A stretch of DNA of 63,998 nucleotides, filler included, from Octopus bimaculoides (lineage: Eukaryota), in assembly GCF_001194135.2 (NCBI RefSeq). It is 4 parts of 4 records of this genome, joined end to end, with 100 filler letters (N's around TTAATTAATTAA, not from the genome) between each part and the next. Parts side by side here need not be neighbours in the genome. Positions count along the whole stretch, not along the records: positions 1 to 28,610 come from NC_069005.1; 3 more parts are not named here. One strand, 5' to 3'. The position numbers and the translations under genes are program-made. Below are positions 609 to 11,779 of the stretch, piece after piece. Position 1 is the first letter of the stretch. Each line of letters begins with the position of its first letter. Under the pieces are notes generated by a model. It searched no databases and was not told where the DNA came from. It was given only the letters and a program-made list of their open reading frames with translations.

Positions 609-1918
609 GGCTCTTTGATATACACAAAAAAGGACCCACTCCATTTAGCTGCGGGGTCATTAACGATGAACAAGGATACCAGCTCGTGGAAGCGTTTAAT
701 TATGCCGTTGATTACGTTAACAGTAACCGAGGAATTTTTGACAATATCCTTCGAGGTGTCACAATTGGTTCTCTTGCTGTGGATGTCTGCCAAAGTCCAA
801 CCAAAGCTGGTAACATCGTGACAAATCTACAAAACAAGAACGCTCATCTCTTCGACAATGCCACCAACTCTTTCATCGATCCAGCAGATTTCCAGGTTTA
901 TGTCGGACCCTTTGATAGCGAATCTTCCCTACGCGTTGCAGATATTCTCACTAAATTAGGAATCCCTCAGATCAGCTACGGTGCCACTAGTGCCGAACTC
1001 TCTAGCGATCGGTACCAATTTTTTTCAAGGACTGTTCCGTCGGACAGCAAGCAGGCACGAGCGTTCGTTTCGTTTTTGAAACGCTACCAGATCAAATACG
1101 TCCAATTAATCAGCACTGAAGATACAATTGGACGGTATGGGAAAGAAGAATTTGCCAAAGTGGCCTTCGAAAACAAAATATGTATCACGCAGAACGTAAG
1201 CTTACCACGAGATGAGTTTCTAACTCAATTTGATGCTGATGTCGCAATCAATAAACTTGCCTTACAGGATGAAACAACGGTCGTTGTGCTTTTTGTAACT
1301 AACCCGCGTCTTCTGCTTGTTTCGGCAGAAAAGAACTACGTTATCACCTCGCGTTTTTTGTTTATAGCTACTGACAAATGGGGCGCCGACCCAGACATGT
1401 TACGAGACCTAAATAAACTGTTATCGAAACGCCAAATCGTTATATTTGATGTAGAAACGGCTGATCTACCGGACTTCGATAAATACCTTGATACGAAAAG
1501 TACAAGAGCGAACAACAATAAAAATTGGTTCAACGAGTATTACGAAGAGCTTTATAGCTGTACAACCACTTCCAACGCCTCCTCGAGGTTTCCTACAACG
1601 TGCAGTGGAACTAGCTATCGAACTTTACCTATAGCTCCGAAATATACTCAGGACCCTTACGTACTTTTTGTAGTCAATGCGGTCTTTGCGGCCGCCATCG
1701 GGATTCATGGGGCATTGCAAAACGTGTGTGGACGCGATTATAACATCATCTGTGATCGATTTATATCTTCCGACCAAAGACCTGCTATTCAAAGGTACAT
1801 TCTGTCATCCCAATTTATAGACCCAGGTCTGCAACCATTTTACTACATGAAAGGAAGCGATGACAGCATTCGAGGTTATCATATATATGAACCAGTTGAA
1901 ACCAAACAGTACACTAAC
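609..1918 (+). CDS. Exon 1 in window: nearly the whole first VFT domain (VFT-A)
   Basis: Acceptor tttcag|gg at 608/609 (phase 1), donor aac|gtaagt at 1918/1919. Translates GLFDIHKKG..SCG..VEAFNYAV..DVC..GPFDSESS..IPQISYGATS..FSRTVPSD..ATDKWG..WFNEYY..QDPYVLFVVNAV. Confidence 0.93.
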
Positions 1919-4900
1919 GTAAGTGACATTTTACAGATACAAATAAATATCCAAGTGGCTATGTCAGTGCACGTCATATTTCTCGAAAGGCATCATATAC
2001 AGCTATAATATCGAAGGTTACCTTGGATAGAGAAATTCGAAGGATTGCTTTGGTCCAATGGCAGGACGCTTGTTATATCTACAGGAGATCTAGGTTCGAG
2101 TCTCACGGGTAACCTTCGCCTTTCCCTATCCGAAAGAGTCTTTTTTTTTTCAAACCAATATTTTGCATGCTATTCTTTATAGTTGTAAGCTATGTGCTTC
2201 GGGAACCATTATTCCAAAACAGAATTATTTTATATTTCTCCAAATTCTTATGATGCCCGCAGTCTATCTATCTATCTATCTATCTATCTATATATACATA
2301 TATNNNNNNNNNNNNNNNNNNNNNNNNNNNNNNNNNNNNNNNNNNNNNNNNNNNNNNNNNNNNNNNNNNNNNNNNNNNNNNNNNNNNNNNNNNNNNNNNN
2401 NNNNNNNNNNNNNNNNNNNNNNNNNNNNNNNNNNNNNNNNNNNNNNNNNNNNNNNNNNNNNNNNNNNNNNNNNNNNNNNNNNNNNNNNNNNNNNNNNNNN
2501 NNNNNNNNNNNNNNNNNNNNNNNNNNNNNNNNNNNNNNNNNNNNNNNNNNNNNNNNNNNNNNNNNNNNNNNNNNNNNNNNNNNNNNNNNNNNNNNNNNNN
2601 NNNNNNNNNNNNNNNNNNNNNNNNNNNNNNNNNNNNNNNNNNNNNNNNNNNNNNNNNNNNNNNNNNNNNNNNNNNNNNNNNNNNNNNNNNNNNNNNNNNN
2701 NNNNNNNNNNNNNNNNNNNNNNNNNNNNNNNNNNNNNNNNNNNNNNNTATATATATATATATATGTCATTATTCAGTTTTAATCCAAGATTTTTTACCAG
2801 TAAAGAAAAATCTGGTTTCTAACCTAGATCCAAGGCTCTTTCATGGGAATTTCAACGGCATCTACAGAGTATGTATGTATGTATGCATGTATGTATGTAT
2901 TCGTATGTATTATAGAAAGCAAAAAGAAAATCAGTGAATGGTACCAGATATTTTTCTCTCGCCACAGATCGGCAGTTATAACGAAACCGATAATCTGAAG
3001 CTGGACGCCAGATACAATATAAACTGGTCGTCATCCTGCTCAGCAACCAGCTGCGCCAAATGTATTTTCCCTCCATCGGAACCAACCCATTTTATGACCA
3101 TGAAGTCGCCGAACGATCTCAACTTAGTCGCCGTCTTTGACATACATTTCGCAGACGATAAGGCGTTTAACCAATGCGGCAATTTAAACACGGCTTCCGG
3201 CTTTCAGCACGCTCTAGCTTTCTTCTATGCCATTCGAAACGTCAACAAAAACACTCGGAACAGACTAGCAAGCAGTCTGCAGTTGGGTGGAGTTGCCCTG
3301 GACACGTGTTCGTTACCGGTCACCCTCGGACTGGATGTCTATAGCCTCTTGACCGGAAGCAGTCGATGCAGAAAAAAAGGCGCTAACGAAATAGTGAGTT
3401 GATTTTTATTAGCTTTTATTTGCTTTATTTTTACTCACATCTCTCAGTTAAAACTACAATGATTTTCTTCCATAGCAGTTTATTCATTTATTCAGTTCAT
3501 TATAATGTAATAATAAGTTGTGCCCGTAATTCAAAGGGTCAGCCTTGTCACACTCTGTGTCACGCTGAATATCCCCGAGAACTACGTTAAGGGTACACGT
3601 GTCTGTGGAGTGCTCAGCCACTTGCACGTTAATTTCACGAGCAGGCTGTTCCGTTGGTCGGATCAACTGGAACCCTCGACGTCGTAAGCGACGGAGTGCC
3701 AACAACAACAACAATAATGTAATAAGAAAGGATGTTGAGCTGGCGGAAACGTTAACACGCCGGACAAAATGCTTAGCGGTATTTCGTCCGTCTTGCACGT
3801 TCAAATTCTGCCGAGGTCAACTTTATCTTTCATCTTTTCGGGGTCGATAAAATAAGCACCAACTAAGCACTAGAGTCGATTTATCAATTTGCACCTCACC
3901 CAAAATTTCAGGCCTTGTGCCCATAGTAGAATGGATTATTGTTGTTGTTGTTGTTGTTGCTGCTGTTGATATTGTTGCTGTTATTATTTCAATATTTTGT
4001 ATACCAGATCTTCCCGCCAGCCAGTATCGTCGGTTTCGTACCCAAAGCTAGCAGCAACGCAGTACCAATCGCAAACATGCTGAGAGACTACGGCATCATG
4101 ACACTCAGCCCAAGTGCTACAACGACCAAACTGAGCGACCAATCGATCTACCCTCACTTTCTCAGAACCGTCCCACCAGACGATCTTCAAGCGAAAGTAA
4201 TGATGGATATCCTGAAGAAAATGCAATGGACGTATGTGTCCAGCGTTTATTCGGACAACGAATACGGCAAAAGTGCCATCCAAACATTTCTGAAGGCGGC
4301 CGATAACGACACAGCGGTCTGTGCTACGAAGATAATTTCTATGCCAATGAACGCCACAAACAAGGAAGCCAAAGATATTGTTGAAAGGTTAAATCGCGAA
4401 GCTGGTGCCAGAGCCGTAGTTCTGTTTCTTAAAGACTATCAGATAAGGTGATTGTTTTTTTGGGGTTTTTTTTTAGTTTTTTTTTCTTTCGATTTTGTTC
4501 AATTTATTTAGACGCAGGATGAATGTGGGATTTGAAGGCATGTAAATAAAGTCGTTCTTAGCTAGACTTGCAATCAGGAACCGCCGACAGATTGTTCGAT
4601 TCTTAACACAACAATTGTTCAATTCTTGTCACGATCTCTCTTCGCCACGTCTCCTCTCTATCATAGACAGCATGGAAAAAAAACAGGGAAATTTTTCTTC
4701 TCTCTCACCGACATGACGTCATCTCCCCCGATGTGACGTCATCTCCCCCTGACGTGACGTTATCTCCCCCCTCTTCCGATCTTCCTTCCACCACAGAACG
4801 CCAGCTAAACTCCTTCCTTCAAAGATTTTTAAGACAGATGATGCGTTTTTATTTTCGTTTTCAACAGGCGTAGGAGTGGCTGTGTGGTAAGTAGCTTGCT

Positions 4901-5031
4901 TACGAACCACATGGTTCCGGGTTCAGTCCCACATCGTGGCATCTTGGGCAAGTGTCTTCTACTATAGCCTCGGGCCAACCAAAGCCTTGTGAGTGGATTT
5001 GGTAGACGGAAACTGAAAGAAGCTCGTCGTA

Positions 5032-5064
<33 letters not shown>

Positions 5065-5198
5065 NNNNNNNNNNNNNNNNNNNNNNNNNNNNNNNNNNNN
5101 NNNNNNNNNNNNNNNNNNNNNNNNNNNNNNNNNNNNNNNNNNNNNNNNNNNNNNNNNNNNNNNNNNNNNNNNNNNNNNNNNNNTATATGTATATATAC

Positions 5199-5242
<44 letters not shown>

Positions 5243-5381
5243 TTGCGTGTTTTTCCCCACCAACATCGCTTGACAACCGATGGTGGTGTGTTTACGTCCC
5301 CATATCTTAGCGATTCGGCAAACGAGACCGATAGAATAAGTCCTGGGGTCGATTTGCTCGACTAAAGATTATTATTGCTGA

Positions 5382-5436
<55 letters not shown>

Positions 5437-6308
5437 GTTCGTCCATTATTCAGACTATTATTGCAAGCAGCCAAGGACCTGGATTTGGTCAACCGTTTCG
5501 TGTGGATCGGCAGTGACACATGGGGAAACAACATGTATGTGGTCAGCAACGGTCTGCAAGAGACAGCAGCTGGTGCCATCACCATACAAATCAGATCAAA
5601 GGTACTGAACGGCTTCCTGGAGTACGTGAAACAACTGACATTAGAAAAACACGATGGAATTCCAGACGATTGGTTCTTCGACTTTTATCAGGATATTCAC
5701 AAATGTCGTCTGCTCTTTACTGACAGAGCGAAAAATTACGATAGAATCTGTACTAAAAATGAAGTAATAACAGACGATAAAATACAACAAGATGCATTCA
5801 TTTTCCACACAGTTTTGGCCGTTGAAATGATAGCGATTGGACTCAATAATATCAAAGAGGTAATTATAAGTCTTAGGTGGTTTTAAATAAGTTTGTTTCC
5901 CAACCACATGATGTTAGCTTCTCTCCCGCTACATGACACACACCTTGGGTAAGTGTATTAGCCCCTGCTATGGCCACTGGCCGATCAAGGCCCTGTGAGT
6001 GGATTTGCTAGGTAGAAACGAGCTGGCAGAAACATTACCCCGCCGGGCGAAATGCTTAGCAGTATTTCGTCTGCCGTTAAGTTCTGAGTTCAAATTGCGC
6101 CGAGGTCGACTTTGCTTATCATCCTTTCGGGGTCGATAAATTAAGTACCAGTTAGGTGGTTTTAAATAAGTTTGTTTCCCAACCACATGATGTTAGCTTC
6201 TCTCCCGCTACATGACACACACCTTGGGTAAGTGTATTAGCCCCTGCTATGGCCACTTTATGTTCAGCCCCTTGTGGGCAATAAAGAAATAAGAAATAAG
6301 AAACTGAA

Positions 6309-6341
<33 letters not shown>

Positions 6342-9300
6342 TGTATGTATGTATGCGTGCGTGTGTGTGTGTATTTCTGTTGTATTTGTCACCTACCACC
6401 GCTTGACAGCCGGTGTTGGTTTGTTTTCGTCTACATAGTTTAGAAGTCTTGTAAAAGAGACCGTTAGAATAAATACCAGTTTCAAAAACAAAAGTACTGA
6501 AGTCGATTTGTCCGGCTAAACCTTTCAAGGCGGTACTCCAGTATAGCTACAATCCAATGACTGAAACAAGAAAGCGAACAGAAAAACGATTAAAAGTATA
6601 TCTTAATTGAAAAGTCTTCTGCCACAGCACACTGGAATGGCTCGCAAATAACACACTTCTCAGAACACTTTGATTATTGTTTTCTATTTGAATTGGGGAA
6701 TCTTTTCCCGAAATATTCTAGGATCATTAAACAAGTTATGTAAGGTATTATCTAATCTTTTCTCTTTGTCTTCATTCATTGATATCATCTTACATACTTT
6801 GCCTCACCTGCATTCCTCAAAGATTAAAGTTTCTTTTTATGGAAACATTTGTCTTCTTTACACATAATACTGTAACGTTTCAAACCAACAGCAATTTTCT
6901 AAAATGTTTAGAGTTATAAGCAGATTTCATTTGAGATTCATATATTGAGACTGAAACAATTATAGTGTAGTAGAGTTGAAACTGGTATTTTAAAAATAAC
7001 ACACGTATGCATTATACATGTTTCATTGAGAAGGCGCGTAACTTATTAGCTAGGGTGTTCGACTCACGATCTTAATGTCATGAGTTCAATTCCTGGCGAC
7101 GCATTCTGTCCTTAAGCAAGACCCTTTATTTCACGTTGCTCTAGTTCATTCAGCTAGCAAAAAATAAGTTGTACCCGTAATTCGAAAAGGGCCAGCCTTG
7201 TCACATTCTGTGTTACGCTGAATCTCTCCGAGAACAATTTTAAGGATACGTGTGTCAATGAAGTACTCAACCACTTCTGCGTTAATTTCACGATCGTGTT
7301 GTTCTTTTGATCGGATCAGCTTGAATACTCGTCATCGTAACCGACGGAGAACCAGAGCCAGAACGTGGTCTGGAAGAGATTTTTAGCTGCTATTTTTAGC
7401 AAGTGTAATATGAGGGGGGGGGCCTCTAGGTAAAAGAAAATACAGGAGGATCTGTTAATTATTATTTCATTCAACATATGTCCCTCTCAGATTCACACAC
7501 TTATTGCAGTGGTCCTTAAGTTTTTCTAATCCCCGTATAAAAGAAGTCAGAAGACTGGACCTCCAACCAGGCCTTCCGCGAGACCCTTGAAGCCAGGAAC
7601 TTTTCAGCACCCCTTCGTACCACTATGTAGCATGCTTTCCCTATATTGTCTTTTATATCTCCATGCACATCCTTATTAACATTGCCTTTTCTAAATTCCA
7701 GTGTCGACAAGACAGTACGGTGAGCGTCGCCAGCTGCTTAGCGCTACAGAAGAACAAGAACGCCATAATCTACGACAGCGTTCGTAAATCTCCGTGGATC
7801 GATCTTCATTTAAGTGACGAAGACATTCCTAGTAATTTTTCCTTCAAATTTACGGAATCCGGTTACGGAGATATTGGTTACGACATTATGAATTATCGAT
7901 TCAATATCTACAAAAACAACTATGAATATGTCAGGGTAAGACATCTTCTAGAGTATTATTTACCGACATCGCCTTATATCCGGCCCTACCAGCCTTTTCT
8001 CCCTTCCTTCCTTCCTTCCTTCCTTCCTTCCTTCTTTCTTTCTTTCCTTCCTTCCTCACGCCAGTGTTGGGAGCAATAGGCTCGGGAACAGAAGGGGTGC
8101 AAGGAGAGTATGCCTCTTAAACTTTTGGCGAATGGGATGCAATGAAAACGCTTTTGNNNNNNNNNNNNNNNNNNNNNNNNNNNNNNNNNNNNNNNNNNNN
8201 NNNNNNNNNNNNNNNNNNNNNNNNNNNNNNNNNNNNNNNNNNNNNNNNNNNNNNNNNNNNNNNNNNNNNNNNNNNNNNNNNNNNNNNNNNNNNNNNNNNN
8301 NNNNNNNNNNNNNNNNNNNNNNNNNNNNNNNNNNNNNNNNNNNNNNNNNNNNNNNNNNNNNNNNNNNNNNNNNNNNNNNNNNNNNNNNNNNNNNNNNNNN
8401 NNNNNNNNNNNNNNNNNNNNNNNNNNNNNNNNNNNNNNNNNNNNNNNNNNNNNNNNNNNNNNNNNNNNNNNNNNNNNNNNNNNNNNNNNNNNNNNNNNNN
8501 NNNNNNNNNNNNNNNNNNNNNNNNNNNNNNNNNNNNNNNNNNNNNNNNNNNNNNNNNNNNNNNNNNNNNNNNNNNNNNNNNNNNNNNNNNNNNNNNNNNN
8601 NNNNNNNNNNNNNNNNNNNNNNNNNNNNNNNNNNNNNNNNNNNNNNNNNNNNNNNNNNNNNNNNNNNNNNNNNNNNNNNNNNNNNNNNNNNNNNNNNNNN
8701 NNNNNNNNNNNNNNNNNNNNNNNNNNNNNNNNNNNNNNNNNNNNNNNNNNNNNNNNNNNNNNNNNNNNNNNNNNNNNNNNNNNNNNNNNNNNNNNNNNNN
8801 NNNNNNNNNNNNNNNNNNNNNNNNNNNNNNNNNNNNNNNNNNNNNNNNNNNNNNNNNNNNNNNNNNNNNNNNNNNNNNNNNNNNNNNNNNNNNNNNNNNN
8901 NNNNNNNNNNNNNNNNNNNNNNNNNNNNNNNNNNNNNNNNNNNNNNNNNNNNNNNNNNNNNNNNNNNNNNNNNNNNNNNNNNNNNNNNNNNNNNNNNNNN
9001 NNNNNNNNNNNNNNNNNNNNNNNNNNNNNNNNNNNNNNNCTTAGCGATATTTCATCTGCCGTTACGTTCTGAGTTCAAATTCCGCCGAGGTCGACTTTGC
9101 CTTTCATCCTTTCATGTTCGATAAATCAAGTACCAGTTATGCACTGGGGTCGATGTAATCGACTTAATACCTTTGTCTGTCTTTGTTTGTTCCCTCTATG
9201 TTTAGCCCCTTGTTGGCAATAAAGAAATAAGAAACGTTAGCACACAAGGCAAAATGCTTAGCGGAATTTCGTCTGTCTTTACGTTCTGAGTTCAAATTCC

Positions 9301-11779
9301 GCCGAGGACGACCTTGCGTTTCAGCCTTTTGGGATCGATAAAATCACTACCAGTTGAGTATTGGGGTCCATGTAGTCGACTTACTCACTCCCTCACCCCC
9401 GAAACTGCTGGTCTTGTGCCAAGATTTGAAACCAATATGTTGGCTGTACCTCTACCTCCACCCACCCCCCATCATAATTTGTTACATATGTTCACTTAAT
9501 CTTACAAGATACTTTATTCTAAGAAATTGAAGAGAAAGTAATATTTTGATATTACATGAAAGTAATTGAAAAGAAATGCAAGTAATACAACTATTATAAA
9601 ATAAATTCTTAATTTTTATTTAATTTTCAGATTGGATCATGGGTCGACTCTTTGAACCTAAACATATTGGACTATCGAGGATCTGAATACGCGGATATCG
9701 CGATTATACCACTGTCACGTTGTCCTGTCGGAAGTACCTGCAACTGCCTGAATGCTAAAGCAGAGAAAGTGCAACAGTCAACACCTCAGTCTGATTTATT
9801 AACTTCGGGTGAAGACAAAATATACATTGACCCAGAAACGGGTGCTTTCGTCAATCTTCGGAGCCTCCCGTCTATAGGCGAACGATTCTCCAGCGTCTGG
9901 GGTACCATTGCAACGACATTGGCCGCTCTTGGAGCTTTTTTCTCGTTCTGTTTGTTCTGCTATTTCATACTTTTCTACCCGTTCCGAGGAGGCACAACCA
10001 TTCTGGGTTTCACGTTGATTATTGCTATTACTGGACTCTATTTAATGGTTATTCCGTTCGTCGCTCACGCCACTCCAGAAGTTTGCAGTATCCGAAGGGT
10101 GTTCCTAGGGTTCTTCTACGCTTTGGCCTACGCGGTGCTGGTGGTGAAACTCCTAGACGCCTACCGAAACATCGACAAGGAAGAACTGAAATACAAAAAC
10201 CTAGCACAACCTTGCGGCTTGCTGTTGATTACTCTCTTCATCGTGGCCATCCAGTTGATGATAGCCATCCAGTGGTTAATTCTACAGCCGCCAGAGGTCG
10301 TTAACGTGCCCGTGGCCGGCATGCTGTATCCTCGGTGCGCCCCGCACGACTTCTCCGACGAATCGCTGGTCATCTCATTCGTTTTCATCATGTTCCTTCT
10401 ACTCGTTAACGTTCTGATTGGTTCGGCTACGTGGAACAACCCGAACAACTGCTACGAATCGCAATGGATTCTGGGAATGGTTCTTCTCAGCATCCCCGTC
10501 TGGATAATTTGGTGCTTGATCTCCACTCTCAGCAGCTACAACGTACGAGACATCGCAGTGGCCGGTGGCATTTTGGTCAATGCCACCATATTGCTGGTTG
10601 TTGGACCACTTAACCGACTGAAACTCATGAAGAAGAACAACAACATGCAACCTTCTGAAAAAGACGATTATTATCTTTACGACAGCGGTGAGTAGAGTNN
10701 NNNNNNNNNNNNNNNNNNNNNNNNNNNNNNNNNNNNNNNNNNNNNNNNNNNNNNNNNNNNNNNNNNNNNNNNNNNNNNNNNNNNNNNNNNNNNNNNNNNN
10801 NNNNNNNNNNNNNNNNNNNNNNNNNNNNNNNNNNNNNNNNNNNNNNNNNNNNNNNNNNNNNNNNNNNNNNNNNNNNNNNNNNNNNNNNNNNNNNNNNNNN
10901 NNNNNNNNNNNNNNNNNNNNNNNNNNNNNNNNNNNNNNNNNNNNNNNNNNNNNNNNNNNNNNNNNNNNNNNNNNNNNNNNNNNNNNNNNNNNNNNNNNNN
11001 NNNNNNNNNNNNNNNNNNNNNNNNNNNNNNNNNNNNNNNNNNNNNNNNNNNNNNNNNNNNNNNNNNNNNNNNNNNNNNNNNNNNNNNNNNNNNNNNNNNN
11101 NNNNNNNNNNNNNNNNNNNNNNNNNNNNNNNNNNNNNNNNNNNNNNNNNNNNNNNNNNNNNNNNNNNNNNNNNNNNNNNNNNNNNNNNNNNNNNNNNNNN
11201 NNNNNNNNNNNNNNNNNNNNNNNNNNNNNNNNNNNNNNNNNNNNNNNNNNNNNNNNNNNNNNNNNNNNNNNNNNNNNNNNNNNNNNNNNNNNNNNNNNNN
11301 NNNNCATATATATATATGTATATACATATATATATATGTATATACATATATACGACGGGCTTCTTTCAGTTTCCGTCTACCAAATCCACTCACAAGGCTT
11401 TGGTCGGCCCGAGGCTATAGTAGAAGACACTTGCCCAAGGTGCCACGCAGTGGCACCGAACCCAGAACCATGTGGTTGGTAAGCAAGCTACTTACCACAC
11501 AGCCACTCCTGCGCCAATGTAGCACTTTCGCTACCTTATCGTGTCATCACAACCCGTAGTGGTTTTGGACAGGTCTAAGGCATTCGTTCGTGATATGGGC
11601 AATGGTTTCGTCTCCTTATTATCTATCATTGCTTCTATTTTTATTATTATTATTATTGCCATATTCTTCATGTGTGTGTTTTTTCTATTCTTTCAGGCTT
11701 AAATGATGACGATGTATTCTATGGCAACGGTTATAACACTGGTCCACGTATCAGAGATTACCCGGCATACCCCCAATAG
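609..11779 (+). CDS. Spliced gene (5'-partial): class C GPCR, mGluR-like, with two tandem Venus flytrap domains + 7TM; exons 609-1918, 2968-3393, 4008-4447, 5454-5859, 7702-7935, 9631-10687, 11697-11779
   Basis: All six introns are GT-AG and phases match (0,0,2,0,0,1). Exons sum to 3956 nt, about 1317 codons plus stop. Class C VFT motifs occur twice (FDIH, CG, DxC, SAT, RTVPxD, D-x-WG, WF-x-E/D, QD), followed by seven hydrophobic helices. Confidence 0.9.
2968..3393 (+). CDS. Exon 2: end of VFT-A, Cys mini-linker, start of second VFT (VFT-B)
   Basis: Acceptor ccacag|atc, donor ata|gtgagt, both phase 0. IGSY..SSCSATSCAKC..LVAVFDIH..QCG..GFQHALAFFYAI..LGGVALDTC. Confidence 0.92.
3512..3940 (+). 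mobile_element. SINE C tail (3512-3712) followed by a full SINE A (3737-3940) in intron 2
   Basis: First part matches 7150-7353. Second part has the head gagctggcggaaacgttaacacgcc and B-box-like gttcaaattc. Confidence 0.75.
4008..4447 (+). CDS. Exon 3: VFT-B lobe 1 and hinge
   Basis: Acceptor taccag|atc (phase 0), donor ag|gtgatt (phase 2). SPSATTTKLSD..YPHFLRTVPPDDLQA..WTYVS..DNEYG..VCA..ARAVVLF. Confidence 0.93.
4867..5366 (+). mobile_element. SINE family B (tRNA-like head, CCTTGGGCAAG-type core, internal TA/TG microsatellite spanning a gap)
   Basis: ggcgtaggagtggctgtgtggtaag..gggttcagtccc..tcttgggcaagtgtcttctactatagc; 3' half cttgacaaccga..ctggggtcgatttgctcgact. Confidence 0.8.
5454..5859 (+). 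CDS. Exon 4: VFT-B lobe 2
   Basis: Acceptor ttcag|a (phase 2, completes Arg), donor gag|gtaatt (phase 0). FVWIGSDTWG..AGAITI..WFFDFYQDIHKC..QQDAFIFHTVLAV. Confidence 0.93.
5873..6257 (+). repeat. Identical 106-bp direct repeat (5873-5978 and 6152-6257)
   Basis: ttaggtggttttaaataag...cccctgctatggccact is present twice, with no mismatch found by eye. Confidence 0.9.
5895..6575 (+). mobile_element. Diverged SINE B with nested SINE A (6020-6298)
   Basis: B sequence breaks at ggtagaaac and resumes at agaaactgaaa after an A copy. Confidence 0.7.
7033..7353 (+). mobile_element. SINE family C (tRNA-like head)
   Basis: ggcgcgtaacttattagctagggtgttcg..gagttcaattcc..ccttaagcaag..tttatttcacgttgctc; related copies at 16545-16762(-), 23900-24025(-), 34170-34445(-), 44425-44612(+). 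Confidence 0.7.
7702..7935 (+). CDS. Exon 5: C-terminal part of VFT-B
   Basis: Acceptor ttccag|tgt, donor agg|gtaaga, both phase 0. FKFTESGYGDIGYDIMNY..YEYVR resembles the mGluR F-x3-GD-x3-RYDIMN segment. Confidence 0.88.
9040..9437 (+). mobile_element. Head-to-tail SINE A dimer in intron 5
   Basis: Two gagttcaaattccgccgagg units joined at aataaagaaataagaaacgttagcac. Confidence 0.8.
9631..10687 (+). CDS. Exon 6: end of VFT-B, second Cys mini-linker, stalk and class C 7TM domain
   Basis: Acceptor tttcag|att (phase 0), donor g|gtgagt (phase 1). IGSW..SRCPVGSTCNC, then seven hydrophobic segments with class C hallmarks (TM3 C-x2-RR..Y-x5-K, TM4 IQL..WL..PP, ECL2 Cys, TM6 E and W). Confidence 0.93.
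11345..11515 (-). mobile_element. SINE B 5' half, antisense, in intron 6
   Basis: Reverse complement of the 4867-5035 sequence with about ten mismatches. Confidence 0.85.
11697..11779 (+). CDS. Putative terminal coding exon: GLNDDDVFYGNGYNTGPRIRDYPAYPQ*
   Basis: Polypyrimidine acceptor ttttctattctttcag|gc, phase 1 matching exon 6, TAG at 11777-11779. The preceding intron contains a ~600-N gap that could hide another exon. Confidence 0.7.

Follow-up and report, generated by a model that had tools for sequence, protein, structure and literature searches.

Modules 4 and 5 of a Five-Module Class C Receptor Gene in Octopus bimaculoides: A Predicted Pocket for Non-Acidic Amino Acids

What might a G-protein-coupled receptor (GPCR) of class C recognize if its Venus flytrap (VFT) modules keep the contacts to the amino-acid backbone, but have lost those to the side chain of glutamate? 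The question is raised by positions 609-5859 (+ strand) of a 63,998-nucleotide stretch of Octopus bimaculoides DNA from RefSeq assembly GCF_001194135.2 (four genomic parts joined by filler; hereafter "the window"), which correspond to four exons of the gene LOC106868777. An earlier note on this DNA, made by manual alignment, had described two pockets here, VFT-A and VFT-B, and proposed an amino-acid receptor that is probably not glutamate-selective. We find that VFT-A and VFT-B are modules 4 and 5 of a longer chain. Our main reading, to which we assign a probability of roughly 60%, is that the region codes for module 4 and the greater part of module 5 in a class C GPCR with five VFTs, which has a predicted clamp for non-acidic amino acids in module 5 and an altered pocket in module 4.

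Residue numbers throughout are those of rat metabotropic glutamate receptor (mGluR) 1; the reference sequence used (residues 33-518) was compared with PDB 1EWK chain A and is identical to it over 486 residues. In mGluRs, Arg78 and Lys409 hold the gamma-carboxylate of glutamate, and Tyr236 is the cation-pi partner of its alpha-amino group. Three MAFFT L-INS-i alignments (24, 29, and 83 sequences) and pairwise HMMER alignments to mGluR7 were all concordant: at R78/S165/T188/D208/Y236/D318/K409, module 4 has L/S/T/D/I/D/Y and module 5 has H/S/T/D/Y/D/F (coordinates in Table 1). These alignments reproduce exactly the residues that had been called by eye at the seven positions of both VFTs, and every motif string quoted in the earlier note is found in the sequence. 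The position of Lys409 is non-basic in both modules, and that of Arg78 holds Leu in module 4 and His in module 5; the glutamate-type Arg/Lys pair, as had been claimed, is missing from both. Basic residues at these two positions, which the earlier note had named as the result that would speak against it, did not emerge from the formal alignment, with the caveat that the His of module 5 is weakly basic. Controls run through the same procedure gave Arg with Lys in canonical mGluR-like sequences, Gln with Ala or Thr in GPRC6A, and Trp with Asn in CaSR.

The alpha-amino-acid anchors (S165, T188, D208, Y236, and D318) were also said to be kept, which is fully true of module 5 (5/5) and true of module 4 except for Y236, replaced by Ile (4/5). 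Module 5 is 29% identical to mGluR1 overall, and identity at all five anchors has a hypergeometric P of 0.002; for module 4 the value is 0.014 (overall identity of the modules about 25-29%). Anchor retention in both modules thus exceeds chance, whereas module 2 of the same protein keeps two of the five (P = 0.36). Elsewhere in the cleft, Asn replaces R323 in module 5 and Asp does so in module 4, and module 5 has Ser at the Y74 position and Lys (in LFLKDYQ) at that of E292.

These assignments depend on a gene model that crosses several assembly gaps. The window DNA is eukaryotic, AT-rich, and microsatellite-rich, with many runs of N, and its position 1 comes immediately 3' of a 2369-N gap; in the same locus of GCA_001194135.2 (chromosome CM046625.1, coordinates given below as L001) this is position 23176. 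Seven exons were read on the + strand, all with AG/GT borders and consistent phases, and splicing them gives a model of 1292 aa that matches, at 100% identity from end to end, the NCBI protein XP_052832771.1 ("uncharacterized protein LOC106868777 [Octopus bimaculoides]"). The initial ~10 residues of module 4 sit upstream of the window. Two gaps lie within introns of the modules of interest; HMMER alignments of each VFT to mGluR7 are unbroken across both junctions, orthologues are likewise continuous there, and the codon split by the second of these introns (AG/A) reads as Arg. None of the pocket codons adjoins a gap. The tandem arrangement is real and not a scaffolding or assembly join, because the exon that bridges the two modules is contiguous, gap-free DNA spanning the end of VFT-A, the linker, and the start of VFT-B.

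The receptor as a whole consists of VFT1 to VFT5 followed by an mGluR-type seven-transmembrane (7TM) domain, and three-Cys stubs replace the cysteine-rich domain of about 100 aa. Pfam detects two ANF_receptor stretches (PF01094, E 1e-82) and 7tm_3 in the window model, and five ANF_receptor stretches with one 7tm_3 in the fuller octopus protein, in agreement with its five VFT-like segments; PF07562 (NCD3G) has no Pfam match in either. The earlier note's "both pockets" implied a two-VFT receptor, which has to be given up, as VFT-A and VFT-B are the two of five modules nearest the membrane. Its view of both as complete mGluR-type VFTs stands: in HMMER comparisons with mGluR7, module 4 gives E 7e-54 (residues 1-449) and module 5 gives E 1.4e-54. 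The best 60 matches of the VFT-A and VFT-B searches are all mGluR, CaSR, or T1R, with no GABA-B among them. The 7TM domain is that of a class C GPCR (PF00003, E 1.5e-27, 97 bits vs. a 33.5-bit cutoff), and its best PDB match is mGluR7 (E 4e-14), with GABA-B1 marginal over about 100 residues (E 8e-3). A TM3 Lys, a TM6 Glu, and a TM6 Trp align with the mGluR7 positions of the class C K3.50/E6.35 lock and W6.50 toggle, which have functional roles in these receptors. Only a C-x5-C-x-C motif precedes the 7TM domain, in place of the nine-Cys domain typical of the mGluR/CaSR/T1R architecture.

Cysteines give further clues to how the modules may be tied together. Nearly all spiralian modules have the mGluR pairs C67-C109, C378-C394, and C432-C439, along with the lobe-2 Cys (C254); the 432/439 pair is often missing from module 5, C254 is mostly missing from arthropod module 3, and C289/C291 are absent throughout. 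In the seven species read, a C-x(3-5)-C-x(1-2)-C stub comes after most modules, and a few linkers deviate from it, such as the nemertean C-x2-C-x2-C; stub Cys 1 and 3 correspond in the alignment to Cys 1 and 2 of the mGluR cysteine-rich domain. In mGluRs, the lobe-2 Cys is disulfide-bonded to the cysteine-rich domain and needed for coupling, and C140 makes the inter-protomer disulfide. We infer that the stubs are minimal versions of the tether between lobe 2 and the cysteine-rich domain. A single Cys in the lobe-1 loop near mGluR1 C140 occurs only in spiralian module 1 (10/10) and module 5 (12/12), and in module 1 alone of arthropods. Because this loop is variable, the large alignment could not be relied on at the C140 column, which was set aside and replaced by a direct count of Cys in the loop segment, together with pairwise HMMER alignment. 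With a loop Cys in the first and last modules, a dimer could be disulfide-zipped at both ends, or module 1 could pair with module 5 within one chain; the pattern allows either.

Structural modeling of module 5 supports the fold assignment. An AlphaFold2 model built on a 30-sequence alignment had a mean predicted local distance difference test score (pLDDT) of 89 and a predicted template-modeling score (pTM) of 0.90; a model from only four sequences (pLDDT 50, pTM 0.46) was unusable. In the better model, pLDDT is <50 at both termini, at residues 106-108 in the Cys loop, and in loop 431-433, and the block that holds the loop Cys (residues 101-110) averages 55. Foldseek placed the model on mGluR ectodomains, with TM-scores of 0.82/0.90 and a root-mean-square deviation of 2.7 Å for the glutamate-bound chain 1ewk_A, and slightly lower scores (0.74-0.75) for open or antagonist-bound chains.

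Taken with its full clamp, its hydrophobic or aromatic distal pocket (His, Phe, and Ser at Y74), and its dimer-loop Cys, this mGluR-like fold makes module 5 the best candidate for an orthosteric site, plausibly one for a non-acidic amino-acid-type ligand. As the membrane-adjacent module, it would act like the VFT of an mGluR, dimerizing via the loop Cys and closing on an L-amino-acid-like ligand whose side chain is neutral or aromatic rather than acidic. Its movement would pass through the lobe-2 Cys and the three-Cys stub to a 7TM domain that has kept the lock and W6.50. Module 4 would have a related but altered pocket, probably for a different ligand, or would serve, like modules 1 to 3, as a modulatory or mechanical element; the case for a non-glutamate amino-acid ligand is weaker here than in module 5.

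An exhaustive HMMER search of 1.84 billion representatives yielded homologues of this receptor. Many of them are full-length proteins, 2730-2872 aa long, in which a signal peptide, five VFTs, and one 7TM domain are all present. Five modules are found in the nemertean Tubulanus, the gastropods Babylonia, Physella, and Bulinus, the bivalves Argopecten, Sinanodonta, Potamilus, and Dreissena, the brachiopod Lingula, and the flatworm Macrostomum; four are found in the chelicerates Limulus, Centruroides, Ornithodoros, and Dinothrombium, the crayfish Procambarus, and the hemichordate Saccoglossus. Pfam counts of ANF_receptor stretches are five for the nemertean protein and four for that of Saccoglossus. 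In Branchiostoma the search matched three stretches of an 1846-aa protein and two of a 1307-aa protein, which count here as search matches only. The family was not found in vertebrates in the searches made. The octopus protein shares the common plan of tandem VFTs, mostly with a stub, one 7TM domain, and no NCD3G. Most full-length models are named "uncharacterized" or "hypothetical," and a few relatives are labeled "metabotropic glutamate receptor 3-like," "glutamate receptor 3-like," or GRM3. Four very long matches (P0039, P0042, P0044, and P0062) were left out because they are V2R/OlfC-like genes of vertebrates fused into arrays, and a word-index homologue search with the 7TM exon as query returned one match.

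A neighbor-joining tree of 83 modules (no bootstrap, and so indicative only) has a separate clade, across the spiralian phyla, for each of modules 1 to 5; module 1 of arthropods falls with its spiralian counterpart, and their module 4 with spiralian module 5. Molluscs have two paralogous multi-VFT genes. The second octopus paralogue (O. vulgaris CAI9740512.1; O. sinensis XP_029653751.1) is divergent, is labeled "glutamate receptor 3-like," and is a member of the other mollusc subgroup (with Bulinus, Argopecten, and Sinanodonta); XP_029653751.1 is ~30% identical to a query of the window's VFT-B and 7TM domain. In Dreissena, the model XP_052236911.1 is a five-VFT receptor fused to a downstream gene at residues about 2760-3852, which has its own signal peptide, one VFT (S-T-D-Y, with Asn at R78 and Phe at K409), and a 7TM domain, and may be a related single-VFT paralogue in tandem.

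Pocket residues across the family form a mosaic: modules 1 and 3 keep the anchor set in some species, and module 2 rarely does. In module 5 the full S-T-D-Y-D set is kept in the closest relatives (Dreissena, an unnamed Logan sequence, Tegillarca, and Argopecten), with S-S-D-Y-D in Sinanodonta and the nemertean and S-T-D-F-D in the flatworm. In module 4 the Y236 position is I, V, D, N, or Y among homologues: I or V in most gastropods, with Asn in Bulinus, Asp in Dreissena, and Tyr in most bivalve, nemertean, brachiopod, and flatworm sequences. The earlier suggestion that the two sites differ gains from this variability, and from the loop Cys being present in module 5 alone of the two. In module 4, Leu occupies the R78 position in 12/12 spiralian sequences; this invariance, together with the retained S/T/D/D, suggests a cleft that is constrained but different.

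Several observations weigh against a functional amino-acid clamp in module 5. Babylonia, Physella, and Bulinus have lost its anchors, which are also missing nearly throughout the four-module homologues of arthropods. Over 12 spiralian module-5 sequences, conservation of the anchors is no higher than that of an average column, and the T188 position is Thr in just 33%. Their retention could partly reflect fold constraints, since some anchors sit in structurally conserved motifs. The closed-like conformation of the AlphaFold2 model is no evidence of a ligand, and the His at R78 and Lys at E292 could contact an acidic group. Because of the losses in some homologues, retention of the anchors is weaker evidence for ligand binding than the earlier note implied, and its interpretation as a whole is partly supported.

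The most serious rival, which we regard as unlikely overall, draws on these same losses: the pockets would be vestigial, with modules 4 and 5 serving as a rigid stalk, a scaffold for dimerization or adhesion, or a mechanical transmitter, and with any ligand binding elsewhere (module 1, module 3, or the 7TM domain) or no small-molecule agonist existing. Module 5 is retained in the three gastropods and in all arthropod homologues examined even though its anchors have degenerated, and there is a bacterial precedent in BvgS, whose membrane-proximal VFT2 is closed and whose periplasmic moiety strains the transmembrane helices (PMC4352136). It does not readily account for anchor sets kept in octopus modules 4 and 5 beyond what their low identity predicts while module 2 lost them, for the full or nearly full sets in the closest bivalves, or for the invariant Leu of module 4, which argues for constraint on the cleft. 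Putative amino-acid binding by module 5 is thus plausible for the octopus and bivalve lineage, beside a structural or relay role.

If the pockets do bind something, the primary agonist could be other than a free amino acid (ions, peptides, or other metabolites), with amino acids at most as co-agonists. CaSR works in this way, sensing Ca2+, with cations as the main stimulus and L-Trp as a co-agonist; it has S/S/D/Y/E anchors with Trp and Asn at R78 and K409, and five modules leave room for several ligand classes. We consider this improbable for the octopus receptor, as similarity to CaSR is far below that to mGluRs (E 1e-22 vs. 1e-54) and none of the CaSR-type cation-site residues were identified. 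Less probable by a wide step is that glutamate or aspartate remains the agonist through substitute basic residues. His517 and the Lys of LFLKDYQ, both in module 5, are at cleft-lining alignment positions; the aromatic residues at K409 in both modules, the Leu at R78 in module 4, and the Asn and Asp that replace R323 all speak against it, and class IV receptors with comparable losses are reported as glutamate-unresponsive (PMC6307864, citing Mitri 2004). Finally, fusion in silico of neighboring single-VFT genes, which might be suspected at a locus full of N gaps when some long matches are fused arrays and the Dreissena RefSeq model runs into its neighbor, can be practically dismissed and was rejected, given the bridging exon, the separate clades of modules 1 to 5 across phyla, and the recurrence of the same module order, one signal peptide, and one 7TM domain in independent genomes of at least four phyla.

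The reading of module 5 as a candidate amino-acid site, with an altered module 4, can also be set beside known receptors. Loss of R78 and K409 with anchors kept is a theme already described for class IV mGluRs, which include Drosophila mangetout/DmXR: both residues are replaced non-conservatively, the backbone contacts are kept, and the same non-glutamate inference was drawn from this pattern (Ramos-Vicente et al., 2018; PMC6307864). Both pockets of the octopus receptor share it, and the class IV protein of Lottia has Ala and Gln at the two positions with S-T-D-Y-D. Class IV proteins have a single ANF domain, a second extracellular domain of about 100 aa, which we read as the Cys-rich domain, and a 7TM domain, in 459-1472 aa (PMC6307864). 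We rejected membership of this class because the octopus receptor has five VFTs without a cysteine-rich domain and because the bit scores of its module 4, module 5, and 7TM domain are higher with class I/II mGluRs (125-157, 177-181, and 40) than with the Lottia class IV sequence taken from the alignment in PMC6307864 (116, 133, and 27), although the affinity comparison is provisional, as it uses one class IV sequence. The analogy to non-glutamate class C sensors drawn in the earlier note therefore holds for the residue pattern of insect mXR; it does not extend to membership of class IV, CaSR, or GPRC6A.

The closest likeness is to mGluR1-8, in sequence (E about 1e-54), structure (TM-score 0.8-0.9), the three intradomain Cys pairs, the lobe-2 Cys, the dimer-loop Cys of module 5, and the 7TM lock residues; unlike them, the octopus receptor lacks Arg78, Lys409, C289/C291, and the cysteine-rich domain, and has five VFTs instead of one. 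CaSR, GPRC6A, and T1R also keep anchors with non-basic residues at R78 and K409, but they are much less similar (E about 1e-22) and combine a single VFT with a cysteine-rich domain (PF07562). GABA-B receptors likewise join a VFT to the 7TM domain without a cysteine-rich domain; they differ in the 7TM match (E 8e-3 vs. 4e-14 for mGluR7), in the VFTs, which in octopus are mGluR-type, and in the three-Cys stub. Outside GPCRs, BvgS/EvgS place serial VFTs before a membrane-spanning transducer, with the membrane-proximal VFT as a mechanical relay (PMC4352136); with a histidine kinase output and two VFTs of another periplasmic-binding-protein subclass, these prokaryotic proteins offer an analogy only.

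Class C GPCRs usually have one VFT per protomer, joined to the 7TM domain directly or via a cysteine-rich domain. Our literature searches for tandem or multiple-VFT class C receptors and for the locus and accession names found nothing relevant beyond bacterial tandem-VFT kinases, and a 2025 survey of class C lists only ANF+NCD3G, ANF alone, and Cache+EGF architectures (PMC12716839). The five-VFT architecture, conserved across phyla, appears to be undescribed. With the residue pattern by itself a known class IV theme, the architecture is the more interesting result.

The remainder of LOC106868777 lies outside the two modules. Exons for VFT modules 1 to 3 are found in L001 1-23175, 5' of the window; the middle of module 3, the start of module 4, and the octopus N-terminus fall in assembly gaps. 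The N-terminal part that is missing is probably supplied by a separate 241-aa ANF_receptor gene call at L001 3090-7193. The 2369-N gap should contain the end of module 3, its three-Cys stub, and the initial ~10 residues of module 4. Residues 813-872 of XP_052832771.1 correspond to L001 20042-20221 in a frame that differs from the homology-bearing one; since the latter (L001 20038-20436) matches the C-terminal half of module 3, with 36% identity to homologue P0002, this stretch, with which the current RefSeq model spans the gaps, looks mis-framed. The older model XP_014769682.1 (2444 aa) reads L001 20038-20436 better. At the other end of the gene, the 7TM exon has two possible endings: a splice at G/GTGAGT (10687/10688) to 11697-11779, or a two-codon read-through to TAG at 10693-10695. 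Open reading frames (ORFs) predicted in related cephalopods (P0020 and P0198) stop at the read-through TAG, ending in ...DSGE and ...DSGK; both are genomic single-exon ORFs rather than transcripts and carry no expression evidence.

Two repeat families are also found in the window (Table 1). The first resembles a short interspersed element (SINE), with copies of about 80-280 nt at 71-88% identity, in introns and downstream DNA and often beside microsatellites. Copies of the second (about 196 nt, 93-97% identity) each abut a TA/TG microsatellite and an assembly gap, which suggests that these repeats help cause the gaps. The window also has a short ORF with ...RPRGRPRMRW... (24209-24391), which resembles the ORF tail of a long interspersed element or other retrotransposon and is probably a piece of a transposon; a 19-nt unit, GAGGTGCCTCAGGACTCTA, repeated in tandem about 10 times (24388-24634); and, 3' of this array, a low-complexity stretch rich in ACC/ATC (24720-25090), both strands of which carry long spurious ORFs. 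Scans of the window for tRNA genes and Rfam families were empty.

Table 1. Features of the LOC106868777 region, in window coordinates. VFT-A is module 4 and VFT-B is module 5; pocket positions carry rat mGluR1 numbers.
Feature	Position	Strand	Remarks
Exon, nearly all of VFT-A	609-1918	+	Phase 1 entry; AG acceptor 607-608, GTAAGT donor 1919
VFT-A Leu at R78	683-685	+	Leu in 12/12 spiralian module-4 sequences
VFT-A Ser at S165	917-919	+	
VFT-A Thr at T188	986-988	+	
VFT-A Asp at D208	1043-1045	+	
VFT-A Ile at Y236	1127-1129	+	Sole lost anchor of VFT-A
VFT-A Asp at D318	1373-1375	+	
VFT-A Tyr at K409	1658-1660	+	
Assembly gap, intronic (exons 1/2, phase 0)	2304-2747		TATC/TA microsatellites on both sides; donor 1919, acceptor 2966-2967
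Bridging exon: final VFT-A strand, three-Cys stub, initial ~110 residues of VFT-B	2968-3393	+	Single gap-free ORF, phase 0/0
Inter-module linker SSSCSATSCAKC	3028-3063	+	C-x4-C-x2-C stub
VFT-B His at R78	3208-3210	+	
VFT-B loop Cys	3367-3369	+	Aligned with mGluR7 Cys136, mGluR1 Cys140
VFT-B exon with S165, T188, D208, Y236 equivalents	4008-4447	+	
VFT-B Ser at S165	4050-4052	+	
VFT-B Thr at T188	4119-4121	+	
VFT-B Asp at D208	4179-4181	+	
VFT-B Tyr at Y236	4263-4265	+	
Assembly gap, intronic (exons 3/4, phase 2)	5065-5183		TA/TG microsatellites on both sides; donor 4448, acceptor 5452-5453
VFT-B exon with D318, K409 equivalents	5454-5859	+	
VFT-B Asp at D318	5515-5517	+	
VFT-B Phe at K409	5797-5799	+	
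VFT-B exon, C-terminal part of lobe 1	7702-7935	+	Outside the 609-5859 range of the earlier note
Exon: final VFT-B strand, stub, linker, entire 7TM domain	9631-10687	+	Stub RCPVGSTCNC (9712-9747); linker ~60 aa with conserved DPxTG
7tm_3 domain	about 9886-10597	+	Pfam PF00003
Last coding exon, (G)LNDDDVFYGNGYNTGPRIRDYPAYPQ and stop	11697-11779	+	Agrees with C-terminus of XP_052832771.1
SINE-like repeat copies	3799-3880, 6012-6169, 9073-9154, 9290-9371, 26639-26796, 27588-27745		Inverted: 20510-20907
Second repeat family, about 196 nt	4866-5063 (-), 11319-11521, 26194-26389		

More broadly, and tentatively, since we hold it to be possible but on balance doubtful, these genes may constitute an undescribed, probably pan-protostome and possibly pan-bilaterian subfamily of five-VFT multi-site sensors, their modules linked through disulfide-tethered three-Cys stubs, in which octopus modules 4, 5, and perhaps 1 would bind different non-acidic amino-acid-type ligands and integrate them into one G-protein output. 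As the family was not found in the vertebrates searched, it may serve invertebrate-specific chemosensation or neuromodulation. A serial five-VFT receptor raises the questions of how clamshell closure travels along the chain and whether one GPCR can read several ligands, and the pocket pattern of modules 4 and 5 provides concrete, separable targets for mutagenesis and ligand screening. If it is indeed a multi-site sensor, the chain would detect coincidences or mixtures, perhaps in tissue such as chemotactile or neural tissue.

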